A stretch of DNA of 64,000 nucleotides from Amoeboaphelidium protococcarum X5 (lineage: Eukaryota; Fungi; Aphelidiomycota). Shown in pieces: positions 22,094 to 33,639 of the stretch. The number at the start of each line of letters is the position of its first letter. Positions within the stretch are counted from its first letter, which is position 1. A program made the translations under genes and the position numbers. The DNA is taken from NCBI GenBank assembly GCA_023515725.1, contig JALDTO010000098.1, positions 1,266,164-1,330,163 on the forward strand. The letters are read 5' to 3'. The notes beneath the pieces were generated by a model. That model saw nothing but the letters and a program-made list of their open reading frames with translations, searched no databases and was not told the origin of the DNA.

Positions 22094-24799
22094 ATGTCTG
22101 AGAATAGTTTGGACGCGAGAGATAGTACTGCTGATCTGCTGGCGACTGGTTCCTAATAAATTGCGTCTGTTGGATGGAGACCTTTGGAGCAATTGTCATC
22201 GTCTACGTAGAATTTGAATGTGTAAAGTCATCGTCCTTCCATTAGCTCTTAATAGACAACAACTACTACCCCCGTCCAGGATGGAAGTGTTATGAAACCA
22301 CCGAGACGTCACACAAGTCGTCCAGTGTCGGCAGTGTACTCTAATGCAGACACTGTGCTGGAGATGTAAGATTTGGCTCAGAATGGGAATAGAGAGAAGC
22401 TTGAGGGTAGTATGCCTAAGTCACCTCTTTTGTCGGCGCAAATTGATGAAGATGTAAACCGTAAAGCTGACCAGCCTAAACGTATCGGATGTCACACCTT
22501 CCAACTTCCTCAGAGTCGAGATGTGAGGAAGGCGTAAGAGCCTGCTTACAGAGAGTCTGATGAGTTCTCCTCATGCTACTACACGCCCATCGTACACGAT
22601 CCAGAAGACTTTTCAGTGCCAGAGTTCAAGTACACCATGCGGTAGTGTATGATGCAGAGACGCACAGAGCTGCTTATTGCGATCACAATGTACAATGAGT
22701 CGGACGAGTTTCTTATACGGACACTTGATGGCGTCCTGGCTAACATTAGGTACATTTATGATTTGTACCGTAATAATCGCAGTGTTGCCGCAGTGAATAT
22801 GATGAAGGATCCGCTTGGTTCGACGTTTATTAGTCCGTAGACATCATCTGCTACTAATGCTGCAGTGGTGCGCGGTGATGTTGTTTGGCGTGACGATCCC
22901 TGGCAGAAGATTGTATTGATGATCATAAGTGATGGTAGATAAAAGTGTCACCAGCGAGTACTGGAAATGCTTCAACTTATGGGTGTCTACCATCCAGATT
23001 CGGTGTTAACTAAACGTGCAGATCCAACTGATGACAATCAAGTTAAGGATGTGACTTGCCACCTGTTTGAGACCACCACTATGGCTGTGATTGACCAAGA
23101 TATGTATATGAAAGGGTATTAGAAGCGCACTGTACCTATTCAAATCGTGTTTGCCTTGAAAGAGAAGAATTAGAAGAAGCTTAATAGTCACAAATGGCTC
23201 TTTAGATCGTTCGCACCTATGCTGAATCCATTCGCGTGTATTCTAATTGATGTAGGAACGAGGCCAAAAACTGATGATTCCATCTATAATCTGTGGAAAG
23301 CATTCGATCGGAATTTGACTGTGGCTGGTGCTTGTGGAGAAATTACTGTGCTGATGGGTAGAGGTGGTGAATATGCCTGTAATCTTTTAAATCCGCTTGT
23401 GGCTGCGTAGAATTTCGAATACAAGATGAGTAATATTCTGGACAAGACTCTGGAATCCTGCTTCGGGTACATCAGTGTATTGCCTGGTGCTTTCTCCGCC
23501 TATAGATGGGAGGCATTGTAGGATATTGATGCTGATGAAGGCCCGCTGTTTAGTTACTTCAAAGGCGAGGATCCTCGAGGTGCGGCTGCTTAGAAGGGAA
23601 ATGTGTTTGAAAGTAACATGTACTTGGCAGAGGATAGAATTTTGTGCCTGGAGCTGGTGGCCAAACGTAACAGTCAATGGATTCTGACGTATATAAAGGA
23701 TGCCATTGCAGAGACTGACGTCCCACCTACAGCTCATGAGTTTATATCCCAACGTCGTAGGTGGAATAATGGGTCAATGTTCTGCTCAGCGTATGCCATT
23801 TTTAATTTGGGGAGATTCTACAGTACCAACCACTCGATTATGCGTAAATTGTGTCTGACATTTGAAATGTTTTACAGTTTCATTAATCTGCTGTTTGGTT
23901 GGTTCGGTATTGGCAACTTTTATCTGTCCTTCTACCTGTTGACGCAGTAGACATTCCGGCAATAGTACGTAATTGTGTTTGAACTGCTGAGATATGCATA
24001 CTGGGCCGTGATTATCTCAATTTTCGTGTGTGGGCTTGGTAATCGGCCATAGGGTGCGAAAGTGATTTACATTGGATCTATGGTGGTGTTTGCTTTGGTG
24101 ATGTGTTACCTGTTGACCATATCTGTCCTGCTGATCATTTAATCATGGCCCACTTCAGGAACGTCATGGATCGTAAATGGAGGCACTAGTAGAGATATAG
24201 TTCTTGCTGTAGCTAGCACGTATGGTGTGTACTTTTTGAGTTCTCTTATGTATGGAGAACTGGTGCACATTGTCACTTGTATAATACAATACCTATTGCT
24301 CCTACCGAGCTACATAAACACTGTATCTGTATACGCGTACTGTAACATTAATGATATCAGCTGGGGAACTAAAGGCGCCACTGAGATGAGCACAACGGAG
24401 AAGAAGAAGATCACTCAGGAAATCATGAACATTGACTAGCACGAGTGTATGGCGCCTCCTGCAGTCTCTCAGAATACACTTGATGATAATTACAAGTAGA
24501 TTGCTACCAAGTTCGCCGTTCGTCCTCCCAAGTAGCACATTCCACGAGATGCCAATAGCAAGAAGGAGGATTATTACAAGAACTTTCGCACATGGCTGGT
24601 ACTGGCGTGGATTTTGAGTAATGGCCTGTTGATAGCTATAATAAGCAGTCCTCTAGTGACCAATGATCTAGCTGGAGGTGGCGCTAATCAGCAGAATCCA
24701 TATGTGGCATTTCTGATGTATTTCATTGCTGTGCAGTCCTTAGTGAGACTCTGTGGTTGTATAGTCTACCTCATTAATCGCAAGCGTCGCGGATTTTGA
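22094..24799 (+). CDS. Chitin synthase, division 1 (class I-III type)
   Basis: [50 protein letters not shown] and SWGTKG motifs. Confidence 0.95.
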
Positions 24800-25196: not shown

Positions 25197-26231
25197 ATGT
25201 CTGAAGATTAGGCTAAAGCTTACAGTGCGCTGATGGGTAATGCAGCGAAAGATCAGTAGTAGGAGGAGAGAGTGAGACTGCATGGAATTCGTTGTCTCAT
25301 CTCTTCCAGGGATGCCGGCCTCATTATTGGTGTTGGTGGTAAGACTGCTCAAGAGATTAGAGATTCTTGCCAAGTAAAGTTGAGGCTGAGCGAAGCGGTA
25401 GAAGGCGCCAAGGAGAGAGTGTTGTTTATCAGTGCGGAGAAGGCTGAGCAGATTGGCAAAGCCGTGCAATTCGTGAGCAGTAAATTGTTGCATCACCGTC
25501 TTGAAATGGCCAAGAGTGCTGAGGAACAAGGTAGACGGGTGTATACACCAAGATCTGTACTTTCCGGTTAGCCATTGTCTGATTCCGAGGTGGAGGTTAG
25601 CCTGCTAATCCCTAATTTCTATGTCGGCGCTGTTATTGGTAAAGGTGGATCCACTATAAAATCGTTGTAAGAAGACTTTGGCATAAAGATGATGGTGTCC
25701 GATAACATGCTAGGACATAGCGATGACAGAAGTGTTAGTTTTGTAGGCGCAGCTGATAAGGTTGGTTTGGCTGTGGGTAGAACCGTTGGGATTGTTCGCG
25801 ATGCTGAGAGTGAGAAGAAGGTTCTAGGTAATACGTACTATCAGCCAGGAGTTGACTCGTCTCAGTATAGTCAGTCTTCATCTACTCCGCGAAGAGGTCG
25901 CTTGTCTTCTGGAACACCGTAGACGAGAGGTGAGCCTGAGGAGACTAGAGATATAAGTGTCGACTCTGTGTACGTTGGATGTATCATTGGTCGCGGTGGT
26001 AAGAATATACAGCATCTTCGTCGAAAGTCTGGCTGCCAAATACATGTTGAGACTGCTCAAGATGGTAATGATATGTTGGATGGTGCGGCCTCGACTTCCC
26101 AAAAGAGAGTCATAACTATTGCTGGATCACCTGCACAGATTGATGTGGCTATTCAATTGATCAATCAGAAGATTGAGTAGGAGAAGGAGCGTCTAGCTAC
26201 TATCAATTCTGAAGGTGGTGAAGGTAACTGA
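25197..26231 (+). CDS. Triple-KH-domain RNA-binding protein (PCBP/hnRNP K-like)
   Basis: Three GxxG loops: IIGVGG, VIGKGG, IIGRGG. Confidence 0.88.
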
Positions 26232-26487: not shown

Positions 26488-27225
26488 TCATTCAAGAGAA
26501 GAGAGTAATTGCTTGCGCTTAAAGTCAACAAAGAAGCTTTAAACTTGATCGTGAGTGGGCAGATCGGTGGGCCATTAGAAGTTTGGTTCTACAACGCTAA
26601 CACCCATTTAAGATTACGCGGCATTTTCAGCTTCCAATAACTGTAGATATGCTCCATCATCTTTCGAATCTTATTACCGCGCATAGCCATAGTATAAATC
26701 CTCTTGAATAACCTTCATCCAGGCCTCTCTGTCCTGGGGATAGCCCGCTCTTAATCGCTTCAACTGATCCTCCTCTTTGAATAGATCGCGCACTTCAGGT
26801 AGCTCTACCGAACGGCCATAATACTTATAATCCATCCTACCATCAGCAATCGCTCGCCCCTAATCTAGATTAGCTATAGGATTAGTGGCTTGAAGCACAT
26901 TCTTTTTATAATCGTGTCCACCTCTATTCACAATATCAACTTCAATCTAATTCTTCTCCCGCATCAGATCATTAATCTCATCATTTAGCTAACGCAGCTC
27001 ATCCTCTGAAATTTTCTTTTACTTTATATCATCCACGATGACATTAATCTTCTTGCCAATCTATTCCAGCAGTTGCAATCTGCGTATCTCTAGCTGAGAT
27101 GTCTTTACAGGGCCATCTCTTCTCTTCACTGGCTTTGAGCGCGGCACAATCAATCCCAACTCTGCCAGCTGAGTCTCCCGCCATCTATACAGCATAGACT
27201 TGGACTTTTCCGCATTCTTTGCCAT
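26488..27225 (-). CDS. ISY1: Pre-mRNA splicing factor Isy1
   Basis: MAKNAEKSKSMLYRW, LRQLNDEINDLMREK, YKYYGRSVELPEVRDLF. Confidence 0.88.
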
Positions 27226-27341: not shown

Positions 27342-29105
27342 TCAAGCAGCAGCGACATTGTTTGGTCTTGTCACCTAGTTCCCTTGATACGCTTTGACTG
27401 CAGCAGAAATTTCCTAATTCTCTTTAATTACTCCGTACTGGCTGTGATAGGCAAATTTAATCGCCTCACTAACATCAACGGGATTAATTAACGCGTCCAA
27501 CTATTGGATCATTGACTGAAGAGCATCAGTCGAAAGATCTGACCCATGATCCATTTGCTATTTGATCGAAGCTAAAGTTTATGACAAATGGGTTTAAGCT
27601 TCGACCGCTGGATTGGTTGCTTCATTAGGATAAGCCTGTTGAAGCTTTCTAGCCAAAAATTCCAGAAATCTATCCATACCTTCGCCAGTGGTCAGACTGA
27701 CTGCAAACGCGTCCATGCATCCCACACCACTAAGACCAGATTTAATACGCTGCTCAAATTCTTCAATAGTCTCATCGGACGGAGCAGTCACCACTTCAGT
27801 CTTACCTGGAACTTTAGCACCGGCGATTTTAAGCGCATTCAACGCAATATCCTCCCTGACTCCACCACCAATTTCGCAGACAATCTACTTGTTACACACT
27901 TTGGCCTCCCAGTGATCAAGTGCACCTTTTCCCTTACCCATACGCACACCCAGCGGCTTGGAAGACATAGGATGTGTTGGCAAGACACGCAACCAGAACC
28001 TACCACCCTTCACCTACTTGACATGACGATGCAGGGTGGCGCGGACTTCTTGCAGACACTTTTCAGTGAGGCGAACGTCTTCCAACACCCTCAAGCCGTA
28101 ATCGCCAAACTTCACGTCATTACCATCCGTGTTGCCGTCCAGTCTTAATGGAATCTTGCCTCGGAAAGCAGTTCGCTTAACATCATCGCCTTATGGACTA
28201 AGAGGGGCCTACTTGTATCTCAACTTGGCAGGTCCTAGAGGTGTTCTGATACTAACCTAATCTCGCTTGGTCAACAGAATCACGGTATCTTGATCGATCT
28301 GGTCCTAAATAATTTGTGGAATAAGCAGCTTATTCTTAGATTTGTACAGCTGAGGCATATCAAGCAACATCAATTTCATATTAGGCTTCCATTCTTCTTT
28401 CTCCGAACGTGATAGCTCCACAGGATATCCAGCAATTCTGGTTCTCACAGCGTCACTTTCGCCATTATTAGGACTGATTAGATCTAGCAATGCCGATTTA
28501 CCAGAGGTATCAGTTCCAGATAAATTAATGCTATAAAGCGCATTCACATGACCACTCAGAAAATCGATATCACAGCAAAAGCGCGATACAATATCTTTCA
28601 CCAGACCATCAACTTTCCCCTTCACTTCAGTACTTTCAGTATGACATTCGCGTAAATCTTTCGCCTTTTATATGGCTTCTTTGATAAGTTGCAGCTAACA
28701 CGAAAGACCGTATTAAATGAATTGATTCTAGTTTGGGAAATTTGAGAGTCTTAATTGGTCTTTGTTGTATCTTATAACGTCATCAGTGGCAGCTAAACGA
28801 ATATCGGCATCACTTGCGCTTTAAACGCGTAATAATTTTTTGATTGTGTCCAAATTCTAATCATTATCAGCAAATACAGATAGAGTTCTATTATCCAGGA
28901 TAGCTAGACAATTTCCGCTTTAGGACACCAGTGCAGCGCTTGCCACCTTGCCGTTCTATGAAGATTACATCTGTCCGGTTAGCTTCTAGAACGCAGACAC
29001 GCGCTTAGGACCATAAATCTCCATCACTGGACCTTTAACTAAAGCCAGAGAAGTTTAAAGATTTTACACCTATGGCTTCCTAAATATCGATGTAATTTGA
29101 CTCAT
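27342..29105 (-). CDS. Chimeric protein: degenerate MnmE/MSS1 (TrmE) GTPase with mitoribosomal uL16m inserted in its G-domain, 587 aa
   Basis: L16 motifs [34 protein letters not shown] and CEIGG (~27790-28210). They are flanked by G1-like [13 protein letters not shown]4 LLTKRD and G5 [11 protein letters not shown], plus a TrmE-like C-terminal helical region. Single uninterrupted frame. Confidence 0.8.
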
Positions 29106-29331: not shown

Positions 29332-29823
29332 ATGTCCAAGTATAAAAATCCAGCCTGTACTGTTGATGCTCTACTTCTAAGAAAACATGGTACAGTTTTT
29401 GACTTGCTGGTGATTAAAAGGAAGAAAGATCCATTCGCTGGTCAATATGCTCTACCCGGTGGATTTGTAGATTATGGAGAGGATCCGGAGAAGGCTGTGT
29501 TGAGAGAGCTCACAGAAGAGACTGGACTGAACACTGACGGTGCTTAAGTTATACTTTCATCAGTACACGGCAGTGCTGAACGTGATCCGCGTGGACATAC
29601 TATCTCAATCGCTTATGCTGTTAAACTTACACATAATGACTGTGACAAGATTTAAGGCTCCGATGATGCCGATTCTGCTGAATGGATAGAAGTGGAAAAG
29701 TTTTAAAACAAGACTGAACAACTTGCCTTTGATCATCTAAGTATCGTTGATCATTTTATGACATGGTTCCGGAACGGTTACCCATCAGGTCAAGAACAAG
29801 GATACTTTATGGCATCGAAATGA
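29332..29823 (+). CDS. Nudix hydrolase (ADP-ribose pyrophosphatase-like)
   Basis: Nudix box GGFVDYGEDPEKAVLRELTEETGL; RDPRG, SDDA and LAFDH motifs. Confidence 0.9.
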
Positions 29824-30057
29824 AATTCATTGTTATTGCTAGGACGAATTATTTGATAATACACTGTACAGTATTTGAACTTTGACCTCCACGCTCTCGC
29901 GATGTGCTATAAATAAACCTTGTTTCACTCCGCTGCTTGGTGATCGCCAATTTTCAACTAATCAACTCCATTTTAGTCCAGTCCAGTTCTTTATCGCCAA
30001 ATCTGTTCACTCATATTTTCATATCAGAGACATTTAAAAAAAAGTATCCATAAAGTC

Positions 30058-33000
30058 ATGTCTGATATCATAGAAAAGTTGAGACGTGAGAGGGAGGAAA
30101 GATAGAAAAAATAGGCTGAAGAGATGGCTAAATTTGAAGCTGATTTGAAGAGTAAGAGGGAGTAGAGATTGAGAGATAAGATGCTGTTAAGTGAAAATAA
30201 AATCACAACTGCTCCCATCTCGTAGCAAGTGAGCAAGACTGCGAAAATAGACACCACCACAAGTATCCTCAAACAGATAAACAGCTCTCTATCCCAAGTG
30301 GAGGCAAATTAGAATCTGGCCAGTCAGTCCATTATGAACTTGAACAAGGACTTGCAGAGGAAGCAGCAGCACAGAGACAACGAGCAGCAGAAATGGTCAG
30401 ATCTGAAACGTCAAGATCGCCTGAAACATCTGGAACGGACAATGAAGCTCGACTCTCTCGCCGCGTCATTCAAGTTTGGGCGAACAAAGCCGAAGCGTTT
30501 CGAGGTGAATCCCAAAGAGTTTTATGATTTGGATTTCTCATATGATGCCAATGGTAGAGATTAGTCTGAGTCTGCGAATAATGCTTTGAAGAATATCTCT
30601 GAGCGTGAATAAGAGTTGCTCGCAATGGTGTAATCCAGGGAGGATGAATTGCTCCAAGATCCTGATGCTTTGCACAGTCTTATATTCAAGGGTGAGCTGA
30701 TTGTAAAGGGAATGAAAGACACTGCGACTTTTGGATTGCTTGGTAAAGATTAATAGGAATCCCTTATAAAAGCATAAATATAAAACAGTCGCGTTGAGAA
30801 CTAGACTGCTAGTGATACTGCACAAGATGATCATCTATTAGCTTCTCCTCTTGCAAGTGATGATGATCAGCCTCAGCTTCGTGAAAACAGATTCAAAGAG
30901 AGAATGAAAAGCTCAATACAAAAAATGGACTATTCAGAGTATTTCCCGTCTAATATTGGCTTGGTTGAAGGCGTCTTTGTGTTTAGAATTGAGGACATGT
31001 AGCCAGCTCAGCTTCCATTGTCAAAGGATTCTGTTTAGCTCAGTGTTGGGGACTGTTACATTGTGCTGAAAGTATTTGAAAATTAAAATAATCAGCTGGA
31101 TTGGAGGATATTTTAGTTTGTAGGTAAATAGTCTTCAATGGATAAGTAAGCTTGTAGCGCTATTTATGCAGTTGGTCTTAGAGATTTATTGCCGCAATCA
31201 TCATCATTAGGAGTGAGATCTGATATTTAACGTGAGCAGTCTGGAGAAGAGAGTTAAGAGTTTCTTAATGTCTTTAGAGCTCTTGGTTTGGATTATCATC
31301 TATCTGATGCATCTTAGGCAGCTTCTGGTGGTTTGTACAGAGTACTAGAGCGCGAATATCCTTTACTCTGCTATCAGGGACATGTTTATTCCTAGCGTCA
31401 CAGAAGAATAGTATATCGTTTGGTTGAGTCTAATTTTTTAGCATTCTCTTCCAAATATAGTTACATTGTTGATGCTGGTAAGTCAGTCTATGTTTGGTAT
31501 GGCGCTGAGTCTCCTTTAAATGATAGAGCCAAAGTTCATCTTCAAGCTCAGCTTATAGTCAGCAATGAACGCTCCTCGATCATGACATCCGCCGTGCAAG
31601 AAGTCTATCAGGGGAGAGAGTTTGAAAACGAAGACTTGATGGAATTATTTTCTGATTGTCAATTGTAGTCTATATCAGAAGAAGAAGAATCTGAGGATGA
31701 TAATGTGACTGTAGGCAGCAATGACATTATATTGAGAGAAATCAGCGCTGAGACTTTGCGAGATGTTAAAAAGACAAAATAGCTGGAGATTGGTAATCTT
31801 GAGATTAGATAGTTAGACTTTGCCACTTTACGTGAGGAATGTTGCTACTTGCTGGATTGCGTCAGTCAGATATTCTTATGGGTCGGTCATTAATGTAGTG
31901 ATCAAGTCAGAACGATTGCTGAACAACTTGCTTTGCCATTGTTAGTGGAATCTTAAACCCGGCCTGGTTATATGTAAATAGTTAAACTTTATTAAAAGAC
32001 CGAGACGGAGATTTTTAAATCCTATTTCAACAATTGGCCTTAGATTAAAGCTGGTAGTCAGTAGAGTCGTGATAATTAGACTGATGGTGAGCAAAAGTCG
32101 GCTTTCTAGACAAAAATTGATATTAGAGCCATTTATGATCAGAGCCCTGGCGGAAGGCTTACGCGTAAAGAAGACGAGTTTTATCAAGAGTTATTTACGA
32201 GAGCCAATAGTCTTCTCCTTAGTTTCAAAGTATTCAGATACAGCGAGGATAGGAGAAATTTTGTTGCAGCTCAAGATTGGAATGTTGATCTTCCTATATC
32301 ATAATCATCACCCACAGCTGATGGTTCAGAGTTTGGACACTTTTGCAGTGATCAAATGTATATATTCCTCTGTGTCTATCGAAAAATATAGAAATAAGAA
32401 GATACGGAGGGTGTCGCCGTATCTAGCGACGCTGACAACGTCCCCCTAGATATGCAAGAGTGTGTCACTTATGTCTGGACTGGGAGACACCTTTAGACGC
32501 CATCCATTGCGTACCTGAAGTTTTAGCATCATTTTAAGGAATAAATTAAAGCACTGATTCTCTAATTAAGTGGTGGTAAGTCGGATGTACGTTTCGTTTA
32601 TATGAACTAGGAGAAAGAGTCTTTAGCTCTATGCGCTCACTTGAGAAAAAGTATTATTGTCCATTGGGGATCTTCGTTAGCATCAGGTAAGGACTCTGAC
32701 CAAGGCTTAGCTCGACTATATCATATTCGAACTGATATAAAATATAAGGTGACTAGATGTATTTAAACGACACCCATGGTGAAGTCGCTGTGTACCAGGG
32801 ATGTGTTTCTATTGATAGGACGTGAACAGTTACCATATCTTTGGATTGGTAATGGTGCTAGCAAAGAGGAAGAGAAATTGGCAAAGCTTGTCGCATTGAA
32901 ATGTCTTCGATTGGATCAAGAGGCGGATATTAACAAGCATGTACAAGTATTTAAAGAGAAACTGGAGCCTGACGAGTTTTGGCATCAGCTCGGGCCCGAC

Positions 33001-33639
33001 TTTGAGAAAGTTAAACTGGCTTCTGGAGCTAAAAGTATCGTATCTCTTGGTCAGGGATATTACTATTCATTGCCACCACCGCGACTATTTAAAGGCTCCA
33101 CAGCATCAGGATCTTTTGTTGTCACTGAGCTCACAGCTGGAAATAATGCTATTTTATATGCTGATATCTAAGGCTCAGGCCAGAATGGCGACTAATCTGT
33201 ATTCTGGTTGGATTCTTGCCCTGGTCGCGGTAAGCCATTTCTGGTGTATGTTTGGATCGGCGCGCAAGTTTCTGATGTTGTTGTAAAATTGGCAAAGAAA
33301 GCTTTAGATTCGTATCTACAGCATTTGGCTGATGGTAGATCTTTAAATTTCAGTGAATGGGATGATGATGCGCGACGCCTAGAAACTTCTAAACGGAGTG
33401 CTGCGGTAGTCAGGCATGATGTAGTCATTGTCAGATAAGGCTCAGAGCCTGACGAATTCCGAGCATTTTTTCATGGCTGGGGATCAGACTTTAGCATTAG
33501 TACTTAAGGAATGACCAATCTATAGATTAATTCACAGCAGCGTCAGAAGTTGATTGAATAGTATATCATTGGAAAATAGATGTAAGAGCCACAAAGTGCC
33601 TTTTAGAGGGGAGAATTGAAAGAAGGTCAATTAGTTTGA
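30058..33639 (+). CDS. Flightless-I-like gelsolin-repeat protein without N-terminal LRRs, 1193 aa
   Basis: MDYSEYF..., GDCYIVLK, SSMDKQACSAIYAVGLR, REQSGEESQEFL and several WxG gelsolin segments. The N-terminus is charged/coiled. Confidence 0.8.

Follow-up and report, generated by a model that had tools for sequence, protein, structure and literature searches.

In the aphelid Amoeboaphelidium protococcarum X5, a fungus-related parasite of algae, the mitochondrial form of ribosomal protein uL16 (uL16m) is encoded as a complete domain nested within the G domain of a degenerate protein of the MnmE/MSS1 family of tRNA-modifying GTPases. As a universal core ribosomal protein, uL16 usually exists as a small polypeptide on its own; throughout a deep lineage it is instead enclosed in the GTPase fold of a different protein. 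Positions given below refer to the window, that is, the whole 64,000-nucleotide stretch of contig JALDTO010000098.1 (GenBank assembly GCA_023515725.1) that was analysed.

Reading frame, gene copies and neighbouring genes

The nuclear code of the window reads TAA and TAG as glutamine: code 6 yields 79 open reading frames (ORFs) of at least 150 aa, versus two with the standard code. Under code 6, the fusion ORF (Table 1) specifies a 64.7 kDa protein from 587 codons, 25 of them in-frame TAA or TAG, lacks introns and ends in TGA. The initial annotation had described a single intronless frame, and every motif that it listed was found there in the order given. An identical 587-aa protein (P0004) is present in NCBI's collection, where its cluster-mates are annotated as A. 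protococcarum hypothetical proteins, and a search of all proteins with aa 147–266 returned as its sole match a full-length record from the same species. Contig C249 carries a second copy of the fusion (90% DNA identity, 587 aa, no indels relative to the window copy), whose product, P0001, is 94% identical to the window protein. An upstream extension of the ORF from a non-AUG start was rejected, the frame being lost between the two copies beyond ~19 codons. Upstream, on the plus strand (29332–33639), lie a Nudix-like gene and a 1,193-aa gelsolin/villin-like gene, both named by sequence only.

Table 1. Features of the fusion gene and of neighbours whose linkage to it is kept in distant relatives (window coordinates).
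Feature	Residues	Position	Strand	Remarks
Whole ORF, MSS1/MnmE remnant with nested uL16m		27342–29105	-	587 aa, code 6
Leader	1–26	29028–29105	-	Weak presequence; clearer and basic in relatives
Degenerate TrmE_N (folate-binding/dimerisation)	27–110	28776–29027	-	Pfam TrmE_N in orthologue P0008, alignment, model
MnmE helical domain, N-terminal half	111–190	28536–28775	-	Alignment, AF2 model
G1 and short switch I/K-loop	191–243	28377–28535	-	G1 at 28494–28520; Thr at Asn226 equivalent; G3 DxxG and Glu282 gone
G-domain strands to G4	244–283	28257–28376	-	G4 TKRD at 28260–28271; insertion point next
Pro/basic, acid-poor linker	284–297	28215–28256	-	Conserved; ends R296-Y297; candidate MPP cut 28215/28214
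Complete fungal-type uL16m	298–441	27783–28214	-	RMGKGKG loop at 27915–27947
Remaining G domain (α4, G5 strand, α5)	442–492	27630–27782	-	G5 at 27678–27701
MnmE helical domain, C-terminal half	493–563	27417–27629	-	YGVIK at 27423–27437 replaces FCIGK
ISY1		26488–27225	-	Neighbour
KH-domain gene		25197–26231	+	Neighbour
Chitin synthase		22094–24799	+	Neighbour

The uL16m insert

The inserted domain proved as complete and conserved as first proposed: on P0001, the Pfam uL16 model matches aa 324–439 with an E-value of 1.7e-32 and TIGR01164 exceeds its curated cut-off, uL16 family models being matched above curated cut-offs over their full length with the RMGKGKG loop kept. Four uL16 matches were found in the genome, namely two cytosolic RPL10 proteins and the two fusion copies, and no uL16 was found on the mitochondrial DNA (mtDNA) contig, C346. 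The fusion is the organism's only mitochondrial-type uL16, and the check for a separate MRPL16 gene advised in the initial annotation found none.

Phylogenetic analysis placed all fused uL16 domains in one clade (support 100/99) that stands beside yeast nuclear uL16m, against bacteria (support 96/93), and shares indels with it, in a tree that sampled yeast-type fungi only, with no early-diverging fungal uL16m, and in which the grouping with yeast joins two long branches. Given this grouping and the shared indels, the donor of the insert was most likely a nuclear MRPL16 gene; a bacterial origin was disfavoured by the tree. A search with the uL16 part alone, among candidates of 82–262 aa, detected no close free-standing relative, the next matches being 35–45% identical.

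The MnmE-derived host

The TrmE_N domain and the helical domain with its inserted G domain are clear in orthologues and weak in the window copy alone. Pairwise BLAST of the flanks against E. coli MnmE alone gave nothing significant, and Pfam and PDB searches of stop-free pieces left them unassigned. The TrmE and P-loop similarity on which the proposal of a GTPase host depended is nevertheless present in the orthologues P0006, P0008 and P0009, which match MnmE up to G4 with E-values of 8e-43, 3e-39 and 3e-30, respectively; P0008 also contains TrmE_N (E 1e-6), with MnmE as the best PDB matches to its N-terminal half, and the C-terminal flank of P0001 matches the NCBIfam MnmE model (E 1.3e-5). 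When the insert (155–159 aa) was removed in silico before alignment, seven members were collinear with MnmE throughout, N-domain to C-terminus.

In an AF2 model, the G4 strand precedes the insert, and α4, the G5 strand and α5 follow it, so that one G domain is built around uL16m. The model matches G domains with Z-scores of ~14–15 and MnmE structure 3gee with a Z-score of 14.2 over residues 23–542 at an rmsd of 18, which means that domain positions differ; its confidence is low (pLDDT 63, below 50 in the linker) and it is uninformative on docking. Alignment and model agree with the initial annotation that this is a domain insertion rather than an end-to-end fusion, and narrow the insertion point, at first placed between G4 and G5, to the gap between G4 and helix α4. 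Since MnmE's own G domain sits inserted in the helical domain, with which our alignment is consistent, the fusion is nested three deep.

The nearest Atlas clusters to P0008 are eukaryotic MSS1/GTPBP3 proteins (score 0.89, a lead only) and the host is probably the native MSS1. A separate MSS1 gene was looked for, as had been advised, and no other MnmE homologue was found in the genome, either by family models or by the MnmE half of P0008, which retrieved the fusion copies only.

Loss of catalytic residues and selection on the flanks

Glu282 (E. coli numbering) is absent from all seven members that could be mapped, and Cys451 from the same seven and from every member that reaches the C-terminus, where an ending of the type (Y/F)G(V/I)L is found throughout and FCIGK has become YGVIK or similar. 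Thus, the initial statement that FCxGK was missing holds for the catalytic cysteine, but the motif itself survives in altered form. The window copy additionally has threonine in place of Asn226 and lacks the K-loop (switch I being shortened) and G3. In MnmE, substitutions E282A and T251A abolish tRNA modification (PMC3695501), and the role of the C-terminal FC(I/V)GK cysteine is named in the title of a further study (PMID 12730230, as cited in PMC2749940). Comparison of the sequences shows that the host has lost residues that MnmE requires for GTP hydrolysis and tRNA modification, in keeping with the earlier description of the GTPase as a pseudoenzyme.

Decay of the G domain is graded among relatives. 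P0006, P0008 and P0009 keep G1 with its asparagine, the G2 threonine, DTVG and NKxD, with Arg252 replaced; these three may remain able to bind nucleotide. A. protococcarum, A. occidentale and P0011 have a shortened or missing switch I; G3 is lost in A. protococcarum, whereas several relatives have DTVG. Some relatives retain Glu80 of the folate site and a basic residue at the position of Lys120.

Between the two A. protococcarum copies, dN/dS is 0.08–0.12 in the flanks, 0.02 in uL16 (which upholds the constraint first proposed for that domain) and zero in the linker and the α4–G5 segment, the latter with ten silent and no amino-acid changes. The GTPase flanks are under purifying selection and not decaying, although the constraint might stem solely from the need for a precursor that can fold and be imported. 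Across species, identity is 63–65% in the linker and uL16, 38–45% in the adjoining parts of the G domain and 21–24% in the distant domains. From its position as the sole mitochondrial-type copy and its dN/dS of 0.02, we infer that uL16m is incorporated in the mitoribosome.

Relatives and a probable single origin

When the full-length protein was used as query, eight long proteins containing uL16 were retrieved, and then two more; one cluster includes A. occidentale KAI3657244.1. This survey of related taxa, recommended in the initial annotation, established that the nested architecture is common to A. occidentale (36% identity) and nine environmental eukaryotic lineages, which came from eukaryotic contigs wherever context was seen. 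The insertion point is identical in all members, and gene order is partly conserved: ISY1 follows the fusion gene in four relatives, as in the window, linkage to the KH-domain gene is kept in two, and linkage to chitin synthase is kept in an A. occidentale-like contig. All members are probably aphelids, A. protococcarum and A. occidentale being those identified to species; no Paraphelidium or Aphelidium record turned up among the fusion matches, and two JGI metagenome scans yielded no further fusion loci. We infer a single insertion event, in an ancestor shared by Amoeboaphelidium and the environmental relatives.

Some relatives, read as called, have introns elsewhere in the fusion gene, and in every one both junctions lie in one open frame. 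Among sequencing runs recorded as RNA, none holds the fusion stretch. In run X5 (2021, filed under another organism), depth changes stepwise gene by gene, dropping to zero between genes on the upstream side, and a 1,171-nt contig over 27370–28540 spans both junctions without gaps; this run is probably RNA, and would fit the host–parasite dual RNA-seq of PMC8657485. If the run is RNA, this contig would supply transcript evidence of the kind that the initial annotation called for at both junctions. The intact frames and ungapped contig speak against separate splicing of the uL16 portion.

The N-terminal junction as a candidate processing site

At the boundary between linker and uL16m, here R296-Y297-K298-Q299 after a 14-residue linker, the motif R-[YFM]-K-[NQ] is kept in 12/12 fused proteins, which are related and so represent one inherited motif rather than 12 events. 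In yeast-type uL16m precursors, R-x-[KS]-H occupies this register to within two residues, and the lysine of R-F|K38 is the first residue of the solved yeast chain 5mrc_K. The motif is expected by chance ~0.015 times per 20-aa window and has about three other occurrences in the fused proteins. It fits four of the five positions of the yeast MPP consensus (PMC5063612).

The linker is acid-poor, with invariant Ile, Arg, Pro and Lys, and is probably a remnant of the uL16m presequence. These features suggest that MPP nicks the fusion at K298, freeing the native N-terminus of uL16; on the simplest reading of the sequences, the last part of the MRPL16 presequence was carried in with the insert, and cutting there would continue. 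Presequences are usually less conserved than this linker, and its high conservation could instead mean that it binds rRNA in an uncut chain. At the C-terminal junction, which is acidic, no conserved MPP-like motif was found in the fused proteins; Arg453, after the insert, is nearly invariant. The candidate N-terminal targeting sequence is weak in the window protein; that of relatives is basic with few acidic residues, and P0012 has a strict MPP motif there.

Mitochondrial rRNA, tRNAs and modification partners

The mitochondrial large-subunit (LSU) rRNA gene is much shortened and broken into two pieces, the 5′ piece lying downstream of the 3′ piece (mtDNA contig C346, L060 8290–7236 and 6861–6390, minus strand). 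Where the model has 82 positions in the 5′ piece, this gene has 11 nt; we take this stretch to be helix 38 in E. coli numbering, a neighbour of uL16, most of which is lost, leaving a short stub. A 5S rRNA gene was sought and none was found. The loss of most of helix 38, together with the missing 5S rRNA gene, would leave room for extra protein beside uL16. On the same mtDNA, cox1, cox2 and cob (L060–L062) are interrupted by introns, in which some in-frame ORFs look like homing endonucleases.

MSS1, MTO1 and MTU1 modify U34 of mitochondrial tRNAs for Lys, Glu and Gln (PMC9917222). Neither MTO1/MnmG nor MTU1/MnmA was found in the genome (one assembly, of unstated completeness); GIDA Pfam matches, considered as MTO1 candidates, proved to be dihydrolipoamide dehydrogenase. 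The 28.4 kb mtDNA encodes four credible tRNAs, Trp (CCA), Gln (UUG), Asn (GUU) and Tyr (GUA), at L060 5641–6226, so most mitochondrial tRNAs are presumably imported. With MTO1 and MTU1 not found and most substrate tRNA genes gone from the mtDNA, the function of MSS1 could be lost, and it looks dispensable; the tRNA-Gln (UUG), an MSS1/MTO1 substrate that is still mitochondrially encoded, counts against this.

With no MTO1 or MTU1 found, U34 of this tRNA would have to be kept from reading His codons by other means. The mtDNA reads Trp as TGG, and the codons of the Gln, Tyr and Trp tRNAs neighbour stop codons; as speculation, retention of these three tRNAs may be related to the nuclear reassignment of TAA and TAG to Gln.

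Discussion

The reading that we prefer, with a probability of about one half, is that the fusion is imported by its MSS1 N-terminus and nicked at K298, and that uL16m is built into the mitoribosome with the dead MnmE body as structural filler. An MRPL16 coding sequence would have been inserted once in the MSS1 loop after G4, bringing with it the last ~14 residues of its presequence and the cleavage site. After import through the MSS1 N-terminus, MPP would cut at R296-Y297|K298 to give uL16m a free N-terminus as in yeast; uL16m would stay joined to α4-G5-α5 and the C-terminal helices (31.6 kDa), and the N-terminal piece (up to 33 kDa) would remain non-covalently attached, because both pieces contribute to the G domain as well as to the helical bundle. 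The MnmE body would then sit on the large subunit beside uL16, filling space where most of helix 38 is gone and no 5S rRNA gene was found. A little more tentatively, we suggest that aphelid mitoribosomes carry, beside the peptidyl-transferase region, a permanent pseudoenzyme module of MnmE fold (~45 kDa, possibly dimeric through TrmE_N), acquired through one uL16m insertion, processed by a single internal MPP nick and filling the helix 38/5S rRNA space, its G domain grading among relatives from nucleotide-binding to dead. The conserved MPP-like site at the N-terminal junction means that the roles first put forward for the host, structural module and import carrier, are not necessarily alternatives.

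Less probably, the fusion stays uncut once its leader has been removed and enters the mitoribosome as a single chain of ~62 kDa, with the linker as an rRNA-binding arm. The linker's 63% identity, equal to that of the uL16 core, its invariant residues and the imperfect fit to the MPP consensus would suit such a chain, but R-[YFM]-K lies where the yeast precursor/mature boundary lies, and the residues before that boundary are outside the solved yeast chain.

We consider it less probable still that MnmE acts solely as an import or solubility carrier, with uL16m cut out or left short-tailed and MnmE released or degraded. Mitoribosomal proteins are frequent products of known tandem precursors, which may keep them from being misincorporated into cytosolic ribosomes (PMC5063612), and the candidate MPP site and near-invariant Arg453 could serve excision. 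Against this, the acidic C-terminal junction lacks a conserved motif and is predicted to form a G-domain helix; purifying selection on all three MnmE domains is not expected of a disposable carrier, and α4–G5 is unchanged between the two copies.

That the G domain became a nucleotide-binding assembly factor, delivering uL16m at a late step of large-subunit maturation and now vestigial in Amoeboaphelidium, seems improbable. Bacterial uL16 does load late, with GTPase help, and the motifs kept by P0006, P0008 and P0009 would be in line with such a role, but Glu282 is lost in all mapped members, Arg252 is replaced, switch I has eroded in the two Amoeboaphelidium species and P0011, and G3 is gone from A. 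protococcarum. There is very little to recommend continued help in modifying U34 of mitochondrial tRNA-Gln (UUG): that tRNA remains, as do Glu80 and the Lys120-equivalent basic residue in some relatives, but Cys451 and Glu282 are gone and the MTO1 and MTU1 genes were not found. An assembly or annotation artefact, or separate splicing of uL16, can practically be discounted, for although no run recorded as RNA holds the stretch, the second copy is collinear without indels, both junctions share one open frame in all relatives and the ungapped contig from the probable RNA run spans them.

If the host does stay on the ribosome, this would be a clean, traceable case of gain of protein mass by the mitoribosome, in which an essential protein drags along a redundant enzyme, whose loss is thereafter prevented and which may eventually take the place of rRNA. 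Laboratory studies use cultures of A. protococcarum with its algal host (PMC8657485), and the relatives form a graded series, so ideas of neutral complexity and of composite precursors for mitoribosomal proteins are directly testable here. The fusion also carries a warning for annotation: in these genomes, MSS1 looks absent and MRPL16 oversized. We found no published description of uL16m within MnmE in the literature searched, a scope that left out most subscription journals and the aphelid genome papers.

Comparison with known systems

The fusion shares with MnmE, Mss1 and GTPBP3 the order and fold of TrmE_N, split helical domain and G domain, but differs in the 155–159-aa insert after G4, in the loss of Glu282 and Cys451, in a genome where MTO1 was not found and, for the window copy, in the missing K-loop and G3. 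It is descended from MnmE/Mss1 while failing that family's catalytic sequence tests, and is unlikely to be a working member. Its uL16m resembles yeast Mrpl16 in having the full domain, shared indels and motifs and R-[FY]-K at the mature boundary, and the two are sisters in the tree; unlike Mrpl16, the fused uL16m has no N-terminal presequence of its own, and the C-terminal half of MnmE replaces the yeast C-terminal extension.

Mitochondrial tandem precursors, such as yeast Atp25 and further cases in N. crassa, S. pombe and plants (PMC5063612), also fuse a mitoribosomal component to an unrelated mitochondrial protein, and the present fusion has a candidate internal MPP site. Atp25, whose parts are joined end to end, gives rise to two distinct proteins, whereas here one protein is nested inside a domain of a catalytically dead host, and one cut cannot separate the two folds.

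Catalytically dead enzyme folds have been recruited to the rRNA-reduced mitoribosomes of mammals and kinetoplastids. As we propose for aphelids, an enzyme fold is kept there for structure beside shortened rRNA; those recruits are separate polypeptides, whereas here recruitment would have come about through a core ribosomal protein inserted into the enzyme.
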